Position numbers and translations under genes: made by a program. The notes under the pieces are model-generated. The model ran no database searches. It was not told the DNA's origin and was given only the letters and a program-made list of their open reading frames with translations. Below, piece after piece: positions 1,556 through 16,687 of a stretch of 64,000 bases of DNA. Within the stretch, counting starts at the first letter, position 1; every line of letters begins with the position of its first letter. The stretch covers positions 1 to 64,000 of IMG/VR virus record IMGVR_UViG_3300043570_001980; one strand, given 5' to 3'.

Positions 1556-2557
1556 GTGAACAAACTACTAGCAATTTTATTAGCCGCAGTAACTTTATCA
1601 GCACAAGCAGACATCACAGGTGCTGGCGCAACATTTCCATTCCCAATCTATGCCAAGTGGGCCGAAGGATATAAGAAAACCACAGGCACTAGTTTAAACT
1701 ATCAGAGTATTGGTAGTTCGGGCGGCATCAGACAGATCAATGCCAAGACCGTGGACTTTGGAGCAACTGATGCCCCAGTAAGCGGTGAGAACTTGGACAA
1801 GATGGGACAAGTTCAGTTTCCTGCTATCATTGGCGGAACAGTTCCTGTTGTAAACTTAGACGGATTCAAGCCAGGTGAACTACGCATCACTGGTACAGTT
1901 ATGGCAGAAGTGTTCTTGGGCAACATTGCCAAGTGGAATGATCCTAAATTAACAGCATTGAATCCAGGTAAACAGTTACCCGATCAACCTATCACCATTG
2001 TACATCGTGCTGATGGGTCAGGTACAACATTTAACTGGACAGACTATCTTGCCACAGTTAGCCCTGAGTGGTTACAGCGTGTGGGTCGTGGTGCCGCAGT
2101 CAAGTGGCCGGCGGCTACAGCAGTTGGTGGCAAAGGTAATGAAGGCGTTGCTGCCAATGTGAACAGAATCAAAGGTTCAATTGGCTATGTAGAGTATGCG
2201 TATGTTAAGAAAAACAACATGACATTCCTACAACTACAGAACAAATCAGGCCGGTATGTTAGTCCAGATGACCTAACATTTGCCGCAGCCGCAGACGGTG
2301 CTGATTGGTTTAGTGTTCCTGGTATGGGGTTGAGTATTGTGGATCAACGTAATCCCAATGCTTGGCCTGTCAGTTCAGCTAGTTTCATCATCATGTACAA
2401 AGAACCGAAGAGCAAAGCCACCAGTGACGAAGTACTAAAGTTCTTTGATTGGGCATTTAAGAATGGTAAGAAAGATGCCGCTGATTTGGACTATGTGGCA
2501 TTGCCAGACAGTTTAACCAAGCAGATCCGTGAGCGTGTGTGGACACAGATTAAATAA
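1556..2557 (+). CDS. pstS: Phosphate ABC transporter periplasmic binding protein
   Basis: Signal peptide; ITGAGATFPFPIY, NYQSIGSSGGI, DFGATD, HRADGSGTT, IGYVEYAY. GTG start with AAGGAG SD. Confidence 0.97.
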   Translation: MNKLLAILLAAVTLSAQADITGAGATFPFPIYAKWAEGYKKTTGTSLNYQSIGSSGGIRQINAKTVDFGATDAPVSGENLDKMGQVQFPAIIGGTVPVVNLDGFKPGELRITGTVMAEVFLGNIAKWNDPKLTALNPGKQLPDQPITIVHRADGSGTTFNWTDYLATVSPEWLQRVGRGAAVKWPAATAVGGKGNEGVAANVNRIKGSIGYVEYAYVKKNNMTFLQLQNKSGRYVSPDDLTFAAAADGADWFSVPGMGLSIVDQRNPNAWPVSSASFIIMYKEPKSKATSDEVLKFFDWAFKNGKKDAADLDYVALPDSLTKQIRERVWTQIK

Positions 2558-7514: not shown

Positions 7515-8051
7515 ATGGCAGAAGTAAAAACATTGTCACGTTCTGAACGTGAAGCACAAATTAAAGATAGAGCAGGATGGGTCATTACTGTCATTGCACT
7601 ATTATTAGCAATTACAACCTATATGTCTAGCGGATTTAGTAGCAAGATATTAAGTAACACCATCAAAGCAAATGATACTTGGAACTTTTATCAAGCCAAG
7701 AGTATCAAACAAAGTATTGCCGAAGGACAGTTAGAAACCACCACAGATCCAAAACGCAAAGAACAACTACAAGCCAAGATTGATCGTTACGAGTCTGACC
7801 CAGCCAAAGGTGAGGGCAAGAAAGAGTTGATGGCCAAAGCATTACAGATTGAAGCCGAACGTGATGAAGCCAAGAAACATACCCCATGGTTGACGTTTGC
7901 CGCAATGGCATTCCAGTTGGCCATTGTACTACTGTCTGCTAGTATTTTAGCTGTGGACAAACGTATGTTTTGGGGCAGTATCGGCGTAAGTATTTTTGGA
8001 ACATTGCTGTTAACCCAAGGCATTTGGCTTGTTATACCACTTGTGATATAA
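7515..8051 (+). CDS. DUF4337-like membrane protein
   Basis: TM, then ANDTWNFYQAKSIK, coiled coil and two TMs. TAAATA at 7487. Confidence 0.7.
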   Translation: MAEVKTLSRSEREAQIKDRAGWVITVIALLLAITTYMSSGFSSKILSNTIKANDTWNFYQAKSIKQSIAEGQLETTTDPKRKEQLQAKIDRYESDPAKGEGKKELMAKALQIEAERDEAKKHTPWLTFAAMAFQLAIVLLSASILAVDKRMFWGSIGVSIFGTLLLTQGIWLVIPLVI

Positions 8052-8062
8052 TCTAAAGAATT

Positions 8063-8371
8063 TTATTTTGCCGGGGGTTTTCGGGGTGTTCGAGATTTTG
8101 TAGGTGCTTTGACAGCAGCCGGTTTCTTTTTAGGCTGTTGTTTCTTAACAGTTGCTTTGGGTTTAGCTGGTACTTCTGTTGGTGCAACTGTCACTGGCAT
8201 GTCAGCAAAGCCCACGGGCACAATTTCAGCTACCGGGGTTGGAAGTTGAGCAATAGCAATGTCTGCTGTATCAACCATTGGTGCAACTTCAACCTTATAC
8301 GGTGCTTCTGTCTTTGCTTCCGCAACTGCGGGTTTCTCTAGCCCAAAAAGTTTTTTAATAAATGTAATCAT
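8063..8371 (-). CDS. Small protein with Lys/Pro/Ala-rich basic tail
   Basis: C-terminus KPKATVKKQQPKKKPAAVKAPTKSRTPRKPPAK; AGGAG SD; late-type TAAATA at 8389-8394 (-). Confidence 0.75.
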   Translation of the reverse strand: MITFIKKLFGLEKPAVAEAKTEAPYKVEVAPMVDTADIAIAQLPTPVAEIVPVGFADMPVTVAPTEVPAKPKATVKKQQPKKKPAAVKAPTKSRTPRKPPAK

Positions 8372-8387
8372 TTGATTCTCCTATATG

Positions 8388-9458
8388 TTATTTACTATGA
8401 TCTTTAAGATAACGGTATTTTATTAGAACACTTGCAATGTCTTTATGCATTGTTTGTTGCCAATCAGTGTCCATCATGACATTGTAATTATGTTCAACAA
8501 TGGATTGTATTTGATGTGTGACTTCTGCTGGATCTAAAGCGGTCAAGTATTCTGCTTGGTCACAGGCCATTTTAACGCGAGTTTCTGTGTTGTCTATGCC
8601 ATCGTAGCTTTCATCTATGACTTTGTTAAATGTTTTAAACCCAAGACGTCTTAGATTTTTCAGATAGTGCTTGCCAGCCGCCACAATAAACAGTCTACGT
8701 GCCAGTATTGGTTTAACTATCTTTTCTGTAAAAAAAGTCCATTCGTTAGCAGGCACAGTTTCTGCCACAAATGAAAAATGTGTTTTATTATAAATGTCCA
8801 CTGGTATAATTTGACTCAAGCTAACAATTTGATTGTTTACCAGGACTTCTTGCACAGTAAATGGAATTTCCTGTTCGGGCTTGGGCAATATTTCAGAAGG
8901 CCATGCAAATTCAGATTCAGAGTAATTTCTTAGGTCAAGATCTTGATCTGTTGGAAAATATGTAACAATATTTTTATCATGGTCAATATTTTTAAACACC
9001 ATGTCTCTGTGCAACTTGTGTCGGCCCAACAACACATCAAAATAATGTGTTTTGTTTTCAAATGTCAACTGTTCCAGTATATTTGGATTACCAACATAAA
9101 AATCTTTGGTACTCCAAAAGAAATAAGGGCACAAATTTACTTCTGAGTAGTTTAATTCAAAATTTAAACTACCACCTATAAAAAAGAACACATTAGAAGA
9201 ATCAAATTCTTTGCACCAATCGGATTCAACCAGTTTGGGCATGAAAATCAACACCATGTGCCCGGTTTTACAAATGTGGGTGACTTTTTCTTTAACTTCA
9301 TTGGAAAATTCTAAAATTTCAACCAGGGCTATTCGGTCTGGTGAAGCCGACCATTCTTCTAAATCTGATGTAACAGTATAGTCTCCAATTTTTAAAAATG
9401 TGGTTGCTTGACTGAGCCACCAGTGGGCTTGTTCTGTGTCTACGTAAATGTTGTACAT
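8388..9458 (-). CDS. Hypothetical protein, possibly glycosyltransferase-related C-terminus
   Basis: 356 aa; FFTEKIVKPI...LGFKTFNKVIDESYD; TAAATA 5 nt upstream of the ATG. Function is a guess. Confidence 0.7.
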   Translation of the reverse strand: MYNIYVDTEQAHWWLSQATTFLKIGDYTVTSDLEEWSASPDRIALVEILEFSNEVKEKVTHICKTGHMVLIFMPKLVESDWCKEFDSSNVFFFIGGSLNFELNYSEVNLCPYFFWSTKDFYVGNPNILEQLTFENKTHYFDVLLGRHKLHRDMVFKNIDHDKNIVTYFPTDQDLDLRNYSESEFAWPSEILPKPEQEIPFTVQEVLVNNQIVSLSQIIPVDIYNKTHFSFVAETVPANEWTFFTEKIVKPILARRLFIVAAGKHYLKNLRRLGFKTFNKVIDESYDGIDNTETRVKMACDQAEYLTALDPAEVTHQIQSIVEHNYNVMMDTDWQQTMHKDIASVLIKYRYLKDHSK

Positions 9459-9526
9459 AATAATATTTAACTACTAAACTCAGACACTATCAATTTATCC
9501 AAAAGTACCAAAATAGCACGTAAAAA

Positions 9527-9557
9527 TGTTGCGGTGCAACAATTTATCATATATAAT
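9527..9557 (+). promoter_or_regulatory. Sigma70 promoter with palindromic operator over the -35
   Basis: TGTTGCGGTGCAACA (9527-9541) overlaps TTGCGG (9529); 17 nt spacer; TATAAT (9552). Confidence 0.6.
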
Positions 9558-9623
9558 ATACACTAAGGACGCTGGATAGGCCGGGTCCTAAATTGTAAAC
9601 TCGCTTAATTAAAGGAGAACACT

Positions 9624-9899
9624 ATGTTCACAGCAGACGCACTAATCGACACCGTTCAAACCGGTAAAAAAACTTTTGTTAATACATTCGTTCAAAACGA
9701 AACTGTTAAAGACTCAATGGTCAAGTTTATTGACGCCCAAGCAGACTACACCAAAAAAGCTGCCAAGGTTGGAATGGATACTTTTACTACAGTATCACAA
9801 GAAATGGTAAAAGCTGGCCAGGAAGCAATGAAATTTGACTACACCAAGTTTGGTGAAGGTATCATGAAGGCTTACCAAAATAACACAGCCAAGAAGTAA
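9624..9899 (+). CDS. Phasin-like amphipathic protein
   Basis: 91 aa, predicted all-helical amphipathic pattern; strong AAAGGAG SD. Family call tentative. Confidence 0.5.
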   Translation: MFTADALIDTVQTGKKTFVNTFVQNETVKDSMVKFIDAQADYTKKAAKVGMDTFTTVSQEMVKAGQEAMKFDYTKFGEGIMKAYQNNTAKK

Positions 9900-9916
9900 T
9901 TTGGCTACCGGTCTAG

Positions 9917-9945
9917 TTGACCAATAAATCCTGTTTGTGTATAAT
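9917..9945 (+). promoter_or_regulatory. Sigma70 promoter
   Basis: TTGACC-N17-TATAAT; ATG at 9952. Confidence 0.85.
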
Positions 9946-9971
9946 AGCTACATGAACAGGATTTTTCTTTT
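9926..9971 (+). terminator. Terminator-like hairpin enclosing a -10 box
   Basis: AAATCCTGTT / AACAGGATTT perfect 10-bp inverted repeat, then TTCTTTT. Confidence 0.6.
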
Positions 9972-10167
9972 ATCCATTTTATTAATTACAGGGTGTACAT
10001 CTACCCGGCCGCCTGTTGACGTCACACTCATTCCTGATGATTGTGCCAATCGACATGCTATAATCAGATGGTTAGAAACTCAGAGTACCCAAAATGATTC
10101 TGCAGAATTTCAACGCCAAGTCCGTGGCCGTATTTGGCGCATCCGTTATATTTGTCAGCCTGTTTAG
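9952..10167 (+). CDS. Small lipoprotein
   Basis: MNRIFLLSILLITGC lipobox. Confidence 0.75.
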   Translation: MNRIFLLSILLITGCTSTRPPVDVTLIPDDCANRHAIIRWLETQSTQNDSAEFQRQVRGRIWRIRYICQPV

Positions 10168-10435
10168 TGGCTGTGCTGTACAACAGCCGATGCATGCCAT
10201 TGATTTAGAAAGCTTTCAAATCAATTGTCGCATTAAAGAACAGCAAATGCAATTTTTGCAGAGCATGCGTTCTGGAAGAGATGAACGCATGCTGGCAGGT
10301 GTGGGAAATTTAACACAACCCTGGAGCCGTTGGACAAACAATGAAGAACACTACCAGCGTCGAAGTATTCATAATGGGCGCACAAACTGGTTGATTAATC
10401 AACATCTAATGCACTTGTCTAGAGATTGTTCATGA
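10094..10435 (+). CDS. Lipoprotein
   Basis: Hydrophobic stretch then LFSGC lipobox; start uncertain. Confidence 0.7.
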   Translation: MILQNFNAKSVAVFGASVIFVSLFSGCAVQQPMHAIDLESFQINCRIKEQQMQFLQSMRSGRDERMLAGVGNLTQPWSRWTNNEEHYQRRSIHNGRTNWLINQHLMHLSRDCS

Positions 10436-10989
10436 AAAAAACATTAATACTTTTACTGATACCAGCGGCTGTTAGTGCTCAAGAATGTGTGCTACAAGAT
10501 CGTACAGTGACCAAAACGTCAGCGGTTATTGCAGAACGCAGTCAGATCAGGAGAGATGTAGTTGCCACTGCTTCTGGTAAAAAATGCATAGTTGACTTCA
10601 GAGCCAGAGTGGGGGTAAATTGGCATACTGCATTTGGTGAGTACAATTGGTCCGGTGACAGACCTGAAAATGAAGCCTGTGCCATTGCAGTTTCTAGAGC
10701 CGATGATTCGGTTAGAGAACGTGTGGGCAAAAACCAAACCACCAATGAAAAAGTTCTGGTCTGCAAGGACCAACCAAAATTGTCCGTTCTGTCTAGCACA
10801 CAAGTTGGTACAGTTGGTGATGTTGGTCAATTTAGGCCCCATCCAGAATACCCAAAACGTTTTTATCATAATGGAACCGAATGTAAATGGTTTGTTGAAT
10901 CTAATTTTGTTGCTCGTGATATTCGAACATACCAAGGTGTTATCTGCCAAATCCGAGAAGGAAAATGGGTAGTTACGGACAAATTTTGA
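10432..10989 (+). CDS. Secreted Cys-containing protein
   Basis: MKKTLILLLIPAAVSA signal peptide; 6 Cys. Confidence 0.75.
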   Translation: MKKTLILLLIPAAVSAQECVLQDRTVTKTSAVIAERSQIRRDVVATASGKKCIVDFRARVGVNWHTAFGEYNWSGDRPENEACAIAVSRADDSVRERVGKNQTTNEKVLVCKDQPKLSVLSSTQVGTVGDVGQFRPHPEYPKRFYHNGTECKWFVESNFVARDIRTYQGVICQIREGKWVVTDKF

Positions 10990-10990
10990 C

Positions 10991-11019
10991 TTGACTGGAT
11001 ATTGCGTTTTATGTACAAT
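10991..11019 (+). promoter_or_regulatory. Sigma70 promoter
   Basis: TTGACT-N17-TACAAT. Confidence 0.7.
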
Positions 11020-11051
11020 TGTGCTATGTTAACTAATGCCAGGAGGCTACA

Positions 11052-11180
11052 ATGAAGATGTTTGTTATTGGTACCATTTTTGGTCTAATACTTGCTACGG
11101 TTGGATTCAGCGGTATTGCTCGTATGCTAGACAAAGGGGTGGATACAGTTAAAACTCAAAGTCAGGAGATGGCAAAATGA
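11052..11180 (+). CDS. 42-aa membrane peptide
   Basis: MKMFVIGTIFGLILATVGFSGIARMLDKGVDTVKTQSQEMAK*; AGGAGG SD. Confidence 0.7.
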   Translation: MKMFVIGTIFGLILATVGFSGIARMLDKGVDTVKTQSQEMAK

Positions 11181-11346
11181 AAAAAGCAGTTGCTATATTA
11201 CTTGTCCTAATGCTTGCAGTTTTTGGTCAGATACTTGCTACTAACAGCAGTATTGCTCGCATGTCAGACAAAGGGGTGGATACAGTTAAAACTCAAAGTC
11301 AGGAGATGGCAAAATGAAAAAAGCAGTTGCTATATTACTTGTCTCG
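11077..11346 (+). repeat. Tandem duplication, 137-bp period
   Basis: gacaaaggggtggatacagttaaaactcaaagtcaggagatggcaaaatgaaaaaagcagttgctatattacttgtc occurs twice; diverged flanking homology upstream. Confidence 0.95.
11177..11317 (+). CDS. 46-aa chimeric peptide created by the duplication
   Basis: MKKAVAILLVLMLAVFGQILATNSSIARMSDKGVDTVKTQSQEMAK*; in frame, ATGA-coupled at both ends. Confidence 0.6.
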   Translation: MKKAVAILLVLMLAVFGQILATNSSIARMSDKGVDTVKTQSQEMAK

Positions 11347-11436
11347 ATGCTCACAGCCTGTGGAACCATGGGCGGAGCAGTAGGTGGTGCCGGCGAAGAT
11401 CTTAAAAAAGCCGGCGAATGGATTAAAACTCGTTAA
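11314..11436 (+). CDS. Entericidin EcnA/B-family lipoprotein
   Basis: MKKAVAILLVSMLTACGTMGGAVGGAGEDLKKAGEWIKTR*; LTAC lipobox and GAGEDLKKAG pattern. Confidence 0.75.
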   Translation: MKKAVAILLVSMLTACGTMGGAVGGAGEDLKKAGEWIKTR

Positions 11437-11445
11437 GGAAAAATT

Positions 11446-12033
11446 ATGAAAAAACTTATTTTATTGGCACCCATTGTGGTTATTTTGGCGGCATGTAGTT
11501 CGTCTCCCAAAGACCCCTACGAACGCAGGGTTTACCATGATGAACAGCGCAGAGAAAAAGCGGCCGAACAGGCCATTGACCGAGCACCCAAATGGATGAC
11601 TGACCTACCAGTTTCTAAATCTGCTGTTTATCAAAATGGTACGGCTGTGAGCCCAGATTACAGCATGGCAGTTAGCAAAGCTAAAACCGTTGCATTTGGT
11701 AAAATTTGTATGAGTGCAGGCGGCCGTGTAAATCAGCAAAGCAAGATTTACCGAACAGACAGTGAAAATGCCAGCACTGAGTTCAGCGAACTGGCAATTA
11801 AAACATATTGCCCAGGTGTTGATATTTCGGGTGTGGAAGTTGCCGCAGAAGGCATCAAAGTTATTCCAGAAAATGGGCGTTTCAGAGCCTATGTTTTAAT
11901 TGCACTACCAATTGGGGAGGCAAACGGAATCCAGAAAGTGACTGATGCTCGTAACCAGCGCAGATTAGCCGAAACCCGTAGTCGTGAAAGCTTTAAAGAG
12001 ATGGAACGTACAGAAACTCAAAAGCCCCAGTAA
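11446..12033 (+). CDS. Lipoprotein (LPP20-like)
   Basis: ILAAC lipobox; PKW...G.A.S.D..MA...A pattern. Confidence 0.7.
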   Translation: MKKLILLAPIVVILAACSSSPKDPYERRVYHDEQRREKAAEQAIDRAPKWMTDLPVSKSAVYQNGTAVSPDYSMAVSKAKTVAFGKICMSAGGRVNQQSKIYRTDSENASTEFSELAIKTYCPGVDISGVEVAAEGIKVIPENGRFRAYVLIALPIGEANGIQKVTDARNQRRLAETRSRESFKEMERTETQKPQ

Positions 12034-12113: not shown

Positions 12114-12689
12114 ATGACACAAATTAAAGATGACGAAGATTACATTAGCCCTGGACAAAGCTTGCTTGAAGCTGGTATGTATGCCTTTATGGGTCCAGTA
12201 GATACCGAAAGTGTTAAGCCGGTAATTGAATGGATTCTTCATGCCAACTATGTTGTTAAGAAAAAGAAAAAAGAACTACTGCTAATGATTTGCAGTGAAG
12301 GTGGAGATTTGGAGCCTGCCTTTGCATTGATCGACGTAATGCAGAGTAGCAACATACCAATCAAGACTGTTGGGCTAGGTCAGATTTCTTCTTCGGGTTT
12401 GTTGATATTTCTAGCAGGAACTCCAGGCCGAAGATTGTTAACCCCAAATACCAGTATTTTGAGTCATCAATTTAGTTGGGGATCAGATGGCAAAGCACAC
12501 GAACTGTTTGCCACAGTCAAAGAGTTTGAACTCTGCCAGAAACGAATGCTTAATCACTATAAACAGGCCACTGGACTTGATGAAGATAAACTAAAACAAT
12601 GCTTGTTGCCACCACATGATGTCTGGCTCAGTGCCGAGGAAGCACTGGACTTTGGAATCTGCAATTCCATTAGCCGACTTGCTCGTTAA
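12114..12689 (+). CDS. clpP: Clp protease proteolytic subunit-like
   Basis: ICSEGG, GLGQISSSG (catalytic Ser position), SHQ (His), DVWLSAEEALDFG (Asp). Confidence 0.88.
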   Translation: MTQIKDDEDYISPGQSLLEAGMYAFMGPVDTESVKPVIEWILHANYVVKKKKKELLLMICSEGGDLEPAFALIDVMQSSNIPIKTVGLGQISSSGLLIFLAGTPGRRLLTPNTSILSHQFSWGSDGKAHELFATVKEFELCQKRMLNHYKQATGLDEDKLKQCLLPPHDVWLSAEEALDFGICNSISRLAR

Positions 12690-16190: not shown

Positions 16191-16292
16191 TTATTTCCAA
16201 TAGTTGTATTTGCTTGCAGGGCTTTGACGATATGCATGGATTATTTCTGCCCAAGCAATTAAACATTCGTAAATTGTTGTAATAATTTTCAT
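16191..16292 (-). CDS. 33-aa peptide
   Basis: MKIITTIYECLIAWAEIIHAYRQSPASKYNYWK*; ATGA-coupled. Confidence 0.55.
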   Translation of the reverse strand: MKIITTIYECLIAWAEIIHAYRQSPASKYNYWK

Positions 16293-16465
16293 AGATAATT
16301 TTCCTTTTGAGAATTAAAATGTCGGATATAATTTTCCAACTGTGCGGCATCGGTAATGCCTTTGGTGTTTAGATAAGCATCTAAACGGCTTTGATAACTG
16401 CTACCTGGAAACATTTCGGCCAGGCGTTCTATAATTCCTAACATAAAGTCAGATAAAGTTTTCAT
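16289..16465 (-). CDS. DUF3563-like small protein
   Basis: MKTLSDFMLGIIERLAEMFPGSSYQSRLDAYLNTKGITDAAQLENYIRHF...; AAAGGA SD. Confidence 0.55.
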   Translation of the reverse strand: MKTLSDFMLGIIERLAEMFPGSSYQSRLDAYLNTKGITDAAQLENYIRHFNSQKENYL

Positions 16466-16515
16466 TGTGTGTTTTCCTTTTGATATAGAGACTTGTGGTT
16501 TCTACGGAGTATTTA

Positions 16516-16530
16516 TGTTGCGTTGCAATA
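16516..16530. promoter_or_regulatory. Second TGTTGC-N3-GCAAYA operator
   Basis: TGTTGCGTTGCAATA, adjacent to TAAATA on the - strand; flanked by direct repeats GGTTTCTACNGAGTA. Confidence 0.45.
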
Positions 16531-16687
16531 TCTCTAATGGTTTCTACTGAGTAATTAAAAATCAATCATTAAGCACCAAGTTAATGACTAAAATACCCAA
16601 GAATCGGACTCAACTAGCCCTGATACTGGATATATCTTTAAATAATTCTGCAGGTTATACAATCTGCTTTTTTAAGGAGTCTATATT

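Follow-up and report, generated by a model that had tools for sequence, protein, structure and literature searches.

When polyhydroxybutyrate (PHB) is being made by Proteobacteria that accumulate it, the genes for the phasins that coat the granules are released from a repressor, variously termed PhaR, PhbF or AniA, which otherwise sits at the promoters of phaP and of its own gene, and the release comes about because the polymer itself draws the repressor onto the granule surface. Such promoters have been characterised for H. seropedicae PhbF and for PhaR of B. diazoefficiens, S. meliloti, C. necator and P. denitrificans. The DNase-footprinted PhbF site of the betaproteobacterium H. seropedicae contains TG[N]TGC[N]3GCAA (PMC3206438), the footprints of B. 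diazoefficiens PhaR give TGCRNYGCASMA, with a TGC-RNY-GCA core (PMC6201568), and the S. meliloti motif, validated by EMSA with mutated sites, is YGC-RNY-GCR (PMC12542648). Host phaP promoters often have two boxes, and PhaR regulons also contain non-phasin genes, small unknown proteins among them. In a different setting, cyanophages carry pstS and phoA with PhoB boxes, and NtcA sites are present in cyanophage promoters, so that a host transcription-factor site in a phage promoter lets the phage read the nutrient status of its host. Is stored carbon also read in this way? Full-text literature searches found no report of a phage-encoded phasin or of a phage gene controlled by PhaR.

The DNA considered here, the window, is the first 64,000 nucleotides of the 341,990-bp IMG/VR virus record IMGVR_UViG_3300043570_001980, which is 95% complete by CheckV, has 40.7% G+C and 28 tRNA genes, and whose near-identical DNA occurs in many lake-water metagenomes, though in DNA runs only, with no RNA run containing the locus. 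A blastn search of positions 8000-12000 against a phage database found no match. Between two divergent genes there is a palindrome, and downstream of it a small gene, the elements being as follows.

9527-9541, no strand assigned: PhaR-type operator, TGTTGC-GGT-GCAACA, inferred from sequence alone
9529-9534, plus strand: weak predicted -35 hexamer TTGCGG, within the operator
9552-9557, plus strand: predicted -10 hexamer TATAAT, 17 nt after the -35, with transcription start predicted near 9564-9565
9566-9589, plus strand: hairpin at the 5′ end of the leader, 9 pairs (5+4) with a bulged G at 9571 and the loop AUAGG
9597-9608, plus strand: conserved leader box AAACTCGCTTAA, between the hairpin and the Shine-Dalgarno sequence, to which no role is ascribed
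9613-9617, plus strand: Shine-Dalgarno sequence AGGAG, 6 nt before the ATG
9624-9899, plus strand: ORF of 91 amino acids, basic (pI 8.8), amphipathic, with three predicted helices (4-22, 26-70 and 73-89)
9926-9971, plus strand: terminator-like hairpin of 16 pairs (9926-9964) plus a T-run

The original prediction was of a phasin-like gene under a PhaR-like operator covering its -35 box, with a 5′ hairpin, a strong Shine-Dalgarno sequence and an amphipathic product, and what it described is there, every element lying at, or within a few bases of, the place it had been given. The palindrome has perfect arms of 6+6 around a 3-nt spacer, whereas read as 7+1+7, the form in which it was first presented, it has one mismatch. 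The terminator-like hairpin, which had not been remarked on, makes the gene a single-gene unit, and one with strong expression signals. As the -35 matches TTGACA at only 3 of 6 positions, a consensus promoter scan did not list this promoter. The neighbouring genes are not PHA-related: they are a 356-aa ORF of unknown function on the opposite strand, a DUF4337 protein, lipoprotein-like ORFs and a ClpP.

How does the palindrome compare with described PhaR sites? It matches the H. seropedicae motif exactly, on both strands, and the B. diazoefficiens consensus at 11 of 12 positions, and its TGC-GGT-GCA fits both the TGC-RNY-GCA core of the latter and the S. meliloti motif. Two of the sites listed for B. 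diazoefficiens, TGCATTGCAACA and TGCACCGCAACA, are identical to boxes in relatives of the phage. The placement, with the box containing the predicted -35 and ending 10 nt before the predicted -10, is also that of host promoters, where the box is over or beside the -35, and the downstream gene is likewise small and amphipathic with signals for very high expression. There are differences too, since the site is in a phage genome with no phaR of its own, and there is a single box rather than the two often found at host phaP promoters.

For host comparison, use was made of the fact that a relative of the phage gene sits on a short contig binned into a Polynucleobacter MAG. All 41 Polynucleobacter genomes sampled carry Phasin_2 genes and 38 carry PhaR. 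TGTTGC-N3-GCAACA with up to 2 mismatches lies upstream of most of 52 phasin genes, often as a perfect 6+6 palindrome, and upstream of 22 of 30 phaR genes. To avoid circularity, a weight matrix was built from every TGC-N3-GCA instance in 81 such upstream regions, the instances being chosen only on the published 6-base core; 65 of the 81 regions hold one, against 0.07 expected per region. The flanks of those instances gave the consensus ATGTTGCACTGCAACAT, which is the phage family's own consensus, and the extended 17-mer at 9526-9542 matches the host-derived ATGTTGC-RNY-GCAACAT. When the 342-kb phage genome was scanned with this matrix, 9526 ranked first at 23.6 bits, 16515 second at 22.7 bits and the third hit was at only 14.1 bits.

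Scepticism about so short a motif is in order, and as a bare pattern it is no more frequent than chance: TG-N-TGC-N3-GCAA occurs 6 times in the 342-kb genome against 5.4 expected, and the 15-mer with up to 3 mismatches occurs 5 times in the window against 3.2 expected. The argument consequently rests on placement, flanks, spacer rule, identity with host sites and conservation. Of 42 relatives, 34 carry the box within 150 nt upstream, while box-like hits in their flanks lie mostly inside ORFs and look like chance. With the host-derived matrix, 26 of 34 distinct upstream regions of relatives exceed the 99th percentile of random 130-nt windows, the median best score being 22.7 bits. Among 26 distinct boxes the arms carry 1.74 bits per position, against 0.81 in the spacer and 0.90 in the flank, every spacer is R-N-Y, and TATAAT or TACAAT, in many relatives with an extended TGn, lies 10-11 nt after the box in 23 of the 26. 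Relatives that lack the box carry a better, TTGAT-type, -35 in its place. Family members only 35-45% identical to the protein in the window (those at the loci L150, L152 and L156) still have a clear box in the promoter, another (L128) has only a 3-mismatch variant, and two lineages (L154 and L129) have none.

The leader is conserved as well. Its hairpin is 98.8% paired across 27 distinct sequences, with compensatory changes in 6 of 9 pairs, none of 500 shuffles reaches the covariation score, and pairing falls to 57% or less when the partners are slid. The only Rfam hit is a sub-threshold one to ROSE_3, at 21 bits against a cut-off of 43. In the same leader alignment the Shine-Dalgarno sequence is conserved and the columns of the AAACTCGCTTAA box are nearly invariant; that box is kept even in the distant relative L154, which lacks the promoter.

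The 91-aa protein belongs to a large family found only on phage-like contigs. It has more than 1450 close homologues, at 81-99% identity, in metagenomes, 42 loci were found in IMG/VR, many of them on contigs of 100-350 kb, and an exhaustive profile search found 356 clusters at 50% identity with E <= 1e-3; the contexts examined for distant members are phage-like. Recent capture from a host gene was considered and rejected, as an HMM of the family found nothing in 299 of 301 Burkholderiales genomes, the two hits being a probable phage contig binned into a MAG and a spurious 22-bit match. The family is phage-specific, old and strongly conserved, with 20 invariant residues, mostly polar, among 29 sequences down to 52% identity. 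The JGI name attached to many homologues, 'ATP phosphoribosyltransferase', has no support from any model and is treated here as a mis-annotation.

Is the product a phasin? Several features point that way. The AlphaFold model from the deep alignment (pLDDT 87) has three helices, and the mean helical hydrophobic moment is 0.331, against 0.197 +/- 0.037 for 1000 shuffles, none of which reaches it, and 0.327 on average for Polynucleobacter Phasin_2 proteins. Phasin_2 (PF09361) is the only Pfam family hit by several family members, 8 of 112 with a best E of 1.2e-4, though at 15-20 bits against a cut-off of 24.9 and in two different registers, and the phasin models TIGR01985 and TIGR01841 recur below threshold in NCBIfam. 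The nearest named clusters by language-model features are Phasin_2 (0.88), PHB_acc (0.87) and PHA_synth_III_E (0.84), all of PHA-granule proteins, but such scores are leads only. In a wide structure search, PhaP of Aeromonas hydrophila (PDB 5IP0) superposes on the model over 70 residues at 2.4 A with Z 7.1, a non-specific match at rank 23 that is one of about 700 chains with Z >= 5 and is tied with hundreds of unrelated helical hairpins.

Other results are against membership of a phasin family. Scans of the protein in the window with Pfam, PHROGs and NCBIfam gave only noise, with no hit even at E <= 10 to the phasin models (PF09361, PF05597, PF09602, PF09650, TIGR01841, TIGR01985 and TIGR01837). 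Profile comparison by hhalign of two family alignments against 52 Polynucleobacter phasins gave a probability of 7% or less, and below 1% against the domain alone, which is not clearly better than the reversed controls, and a host-phasin HMM scored about 10 bits against family members. A profile search of PDB sequences found nothing meaningful, and neither Foldseek against the PDB with two models nor an atlas shape search gave a significant match. The protein is half the length of the Polynucleobacter phasins (91 against about 180-200 aa), and is far more strongly conserved than phasins usually are, its invariant polar residues suggesting a specific partner rather than a generic polymer coat. 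The original interpretation is thus upheld in part: its operator half stands up well, its phasin half is only suggestive. The further suggestion, that the phage may mobilise PHA, remains conjecture; searches of the phage genome found no PhaR DNA-binding (N-terminal) domain, no PhaC and no intracellular or extracellular PhaZ, so any mobilisation would have to go through host enzymes, and a PhaR acting at the site would have to be the host's.

Which host might that be? Probably it is a PHB-accumulating freshwater betaproteobacterium, but the indications of genus conflict. The exact palindrome is commonest in Polynucleobacter, yet the PstS-like protein of the phage (1556-2557; PBP_like_2) is 70-76% identical to proteins of small-genome Burkholderiales with 52-64% G+C, and only 54-61% identical to those of Polynucleobacter. 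All five of the genomes with the closest PstS carry PhaR and Phasin_2 with related boxes. MAG binning of related contigs gives both Polynucleobacter and Haliscomenobacter.

The second-best matrix hit in the phage genome (16515-16531) is intergenic, 50 nt upstream of a 58-aa ORF on the minus strand (16289-16465) which is also a widespread phage gene, with 312 relatives in IMG/VR. Of 35 distinct upstream regions of that gene, 12 score above the 99th-percentile background with the host matrix, 11 carrying the canonical box at up to 2 mismatches, while 15 carry a variant, TGTGCG-N2-CGCACA, that was not found in the host loci examined. All have their own conserved leader hairpin. This fits a small phage 'PhaR regulon', though the variant keeps alive the possibility of a different regulator.

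The explanation favoured, at a probability of about 0.5, is that the 91-aa gene is a single-gene transcription unit with its promoter built around an operator for the PHB-sensing repressor of the host. In this view, taken from the established PhaR model, in a cell without free PHB surface PhaR would sit on TGTTGC-RNY-GCAACA and occlude the -35 region, and when PHB is being made it would be drawn onto the granules and the phage gene derepressed, exactly as host phaP is. Once transcribed, the 5′ stem-loop, the leader box and the strong Shine-Dalgarno sequence would give very high output. The stem-loop is most likely a stabiliser of the mRNA, as inferred from its position 1-3 nt from the predicted start, but its conserved loop and bulge could equally be a protein-binding site. 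The product most likely acts at the granule surface as a phasin-like coat or adaptor that couples infection to the carbon reserve of the host, possibly by displacing host granule proteins or by promoting depolymerisation. What the analysis itself establishes is the anatomy, the identity of the motif with host PhaR boxes and its conservation, whereas binding by PhaR, the direction of regulation including derepression by PHB, the association of the protein with granules and any benefit to the phage are inferences. That the site is a PhaR-type operator is well supported by the comparative evidence and is considered likely; that the protein works like a phasin, or acts at the granule, is plausible but, even given such an operator, no better than an even chance.

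Could PhaR control a product that is not a phasin, serving only as a sensor of carbon state? The operator evidence would be the same, the conservation of polar residues and absence of significant phasin homology would be in keeping, and non-phasin genes are present in known PhaR regulons. The protein might then bind a specific partner, for instance PhaR itself as an anti-repressor, a depolymerase, PhaM or a phage protein, or do something unrelated to granules. However, the only recurrent hints of function all point to PHA-granule proteins, amphipathicity, small size and expression signals are typical of phasins, and no partner has been identified, so that this is judged less likely than the favoured explanation, though it is the strongest of the alternatives. 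Somewhat less likely again is that the palindrome is the site of a different regulator, phage-encoded or another host factor, resembling PhaR boxes only by coincidence, with the gene then simply a highly expressed one of unknown role. The chance-level count, the variant palindrome at the second gene, the co-conservation of gene and box, which a dedicated phage regulator would also explain, and an extra palindrome, TTAGTGA-N4-TCACTAA, upstream in most relatives, can be cited for it. But the match extends beyond the core to the flanks (ATGT...ACAT), the R-N-Y spacer rule and the position over the -35, all as at host phasin and phaR promoters, no PhaR-like DNA-binding domain was found in the phage, and there being only two high-scoring sites in 342 kb argues against a general class of phage promoter or repeat, a reading that was rejected.

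Two other possibilities are very unlikely. Autoregulation by the 91-aa protein through the palindrome is suggested by the co-conservation of the two over deep divergence and by the basic nature and invariant polar residues of the protein, but no DNA-binding fold or family was detected in the family and structure searches, the same box sits at phasin and phaR promoters of bacteria that lack this protein family, and a second, unrelated phage gene also carries it. That the palindrome is instead a structural hairpin, such as a bidirectional terminator, has in its favour that a terminator scan lists it on both strands as a 6-bp stem with a 3-nt loop. It is rejected as no gene converges on the palindrome, which lies between divergent genes and upstream of the predicted start, its arms are conserved in sequence rather than by covariation, its spacer follows the rule of PhaR sites and the T-tails are weak.

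Phages are known to read host phosphate and nitrogen status through host regulators, and while this phage also carries a PstS-like gene, the signal at the locus considered here would be stored carbon, read through a repressor that is titrated by the polymer itself, a kind of control of a phage gene of which no report was found. What is new is the combination of a host-regulator site in a phage promoter with a phasin-like gene putatively under PhaR control. A bolder reading, compatible with the evidence but less likely than not, is that a widespread lineage of freshwater jumbo phages has wired at least two of its own small genes, the 91-aa gene and the 58-aa gene, into the PhaR circuit of the host and so measures stored carbon during infection, with the 91-aa product a new, phage-specific class of PHB-granule protein that takes over the granule surface to release or protect the reserve for phage replication. 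In practical terms, the box gives a new marker for host prediction, as hosts must carry PhaR, and the protein is a candidate for a compact PHB-binding tag. PHB is the main carbon and energy reserve of many lake Betaproteobacteria, and a 342-kb phage is expensive to build. A phage promoter gated by PhaR would make expression depend on whether the infected cell holds PHB, a simple way for host physiology to shape infection, and it would add PHB turnover to the processes that viruses may redirect in lakes. Given the size of the family, any function would be ecologically widespread.

The features considered here, besides the 91-aa gene itself, include the following.
16515-16531, second-best PhaR-box matrix hit in the genome
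16289-16465, minus strand, conserved 58-aa phage ORF
9597-9608, leader box of the 91-aa gene
9917-9964, terminator hairpin of the 91-aa gene with a near-consensus promoter
11052-11436, three small tandem ORFs
7515-8051 and 12114-12689, a DUF4337 membrane protein and a ClpP-family protease
1556-2557, plus strand, PstS-like periplasmic binding protein (PBP_like_2)

The matrix hit at 16515-16531 (ATGTTGCGTTGCAATAT), with a score of 22.7 bits, is intergenic and lies 50 nt upstream of the 58-aa ORF. Relatives of that ORF carry either the canonical box (12 of 35 above background) or a variant, TGTGCG-N2-CGCACA (15 of 35), plus their own conserved leader hairpin. The protein has no Pfam hit, and the nearest named language-model cluster is DUF3563, at 0.89.

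Is the PhaR-type box the only palindrome upstream of the 91-aa gene? Not in most of its relatives, L006, L015, L020 and L036 among these loci, where an 18-bp palindrome, TTAGTGA-N4-TCACTAA, is present about 55-72 nt upstream of the predicted start. Centred near -62.5, upstream of the PhaR-type box, it is in the position typical of a class I activator site, though it is absent in the window and is not a repeated element in this genome, where only 3 chance-like hits to it occur. Downstream of the predicted start, the leader box at 9597-9608, AAACTCGCTTAA, is nearly invariant and lies between the hairpin and the SD. It is retained even in a distant relative, the locus L154, that has no promoter of its own. 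As for the coding region, JGI gives many members of this family, P0009 and P0013 among the homologues, the name ‘ATP phosphoribosyltransferase’, but no Pfam or NCBIfam model supports that name.

The terminator hairpin of the 91-aa gene contains a near-consensus promoter, TTGACC-17-TATAAT, which has 11 of 12 matches and faces the next ORF, a lipoprotein-like gene starting near 9952. Further along, the three tandem ORFs at 11052-11436 are of 40-46 aa and have signal- or lipoprotein-like N-termini, and as two of them end in the same roughly 20-residue tail, a recent tandem duplication is suggested. The DUF4337 membrane protein and the ClpP-family protease flank the region, and a distant relative of the 91-aa gene also has a ClpP two genes downstream. 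Outside the window, at 118,874-132,737 of the phage genome (G000), there is a cluster of 28 tRNA genes covering most amino acids.

Contigs carrying relatives of this phage (loci L045, L131 and L133 on contig C115 of genome G001, and locus L044 in genome G002) are binned into a Polynucleobacter MAG and a Haliscomenobacter MAG. They share up to 84% nucleotide identity with positions 1-624 of the window, and a 69%-identical 91-aa protein. This is probably phage DNA mis-binned into the MAGs. The PstS-like protein, in connection with which the original prediction mentioned a Pho box, on present evidence no more than a suggestion, is 70-76% identical to proteins of small-genome Burkholderiales with 52-64% G+C, and 54-61% identical to Polynucleobacter proteins, which is a hint about the host of this phage.
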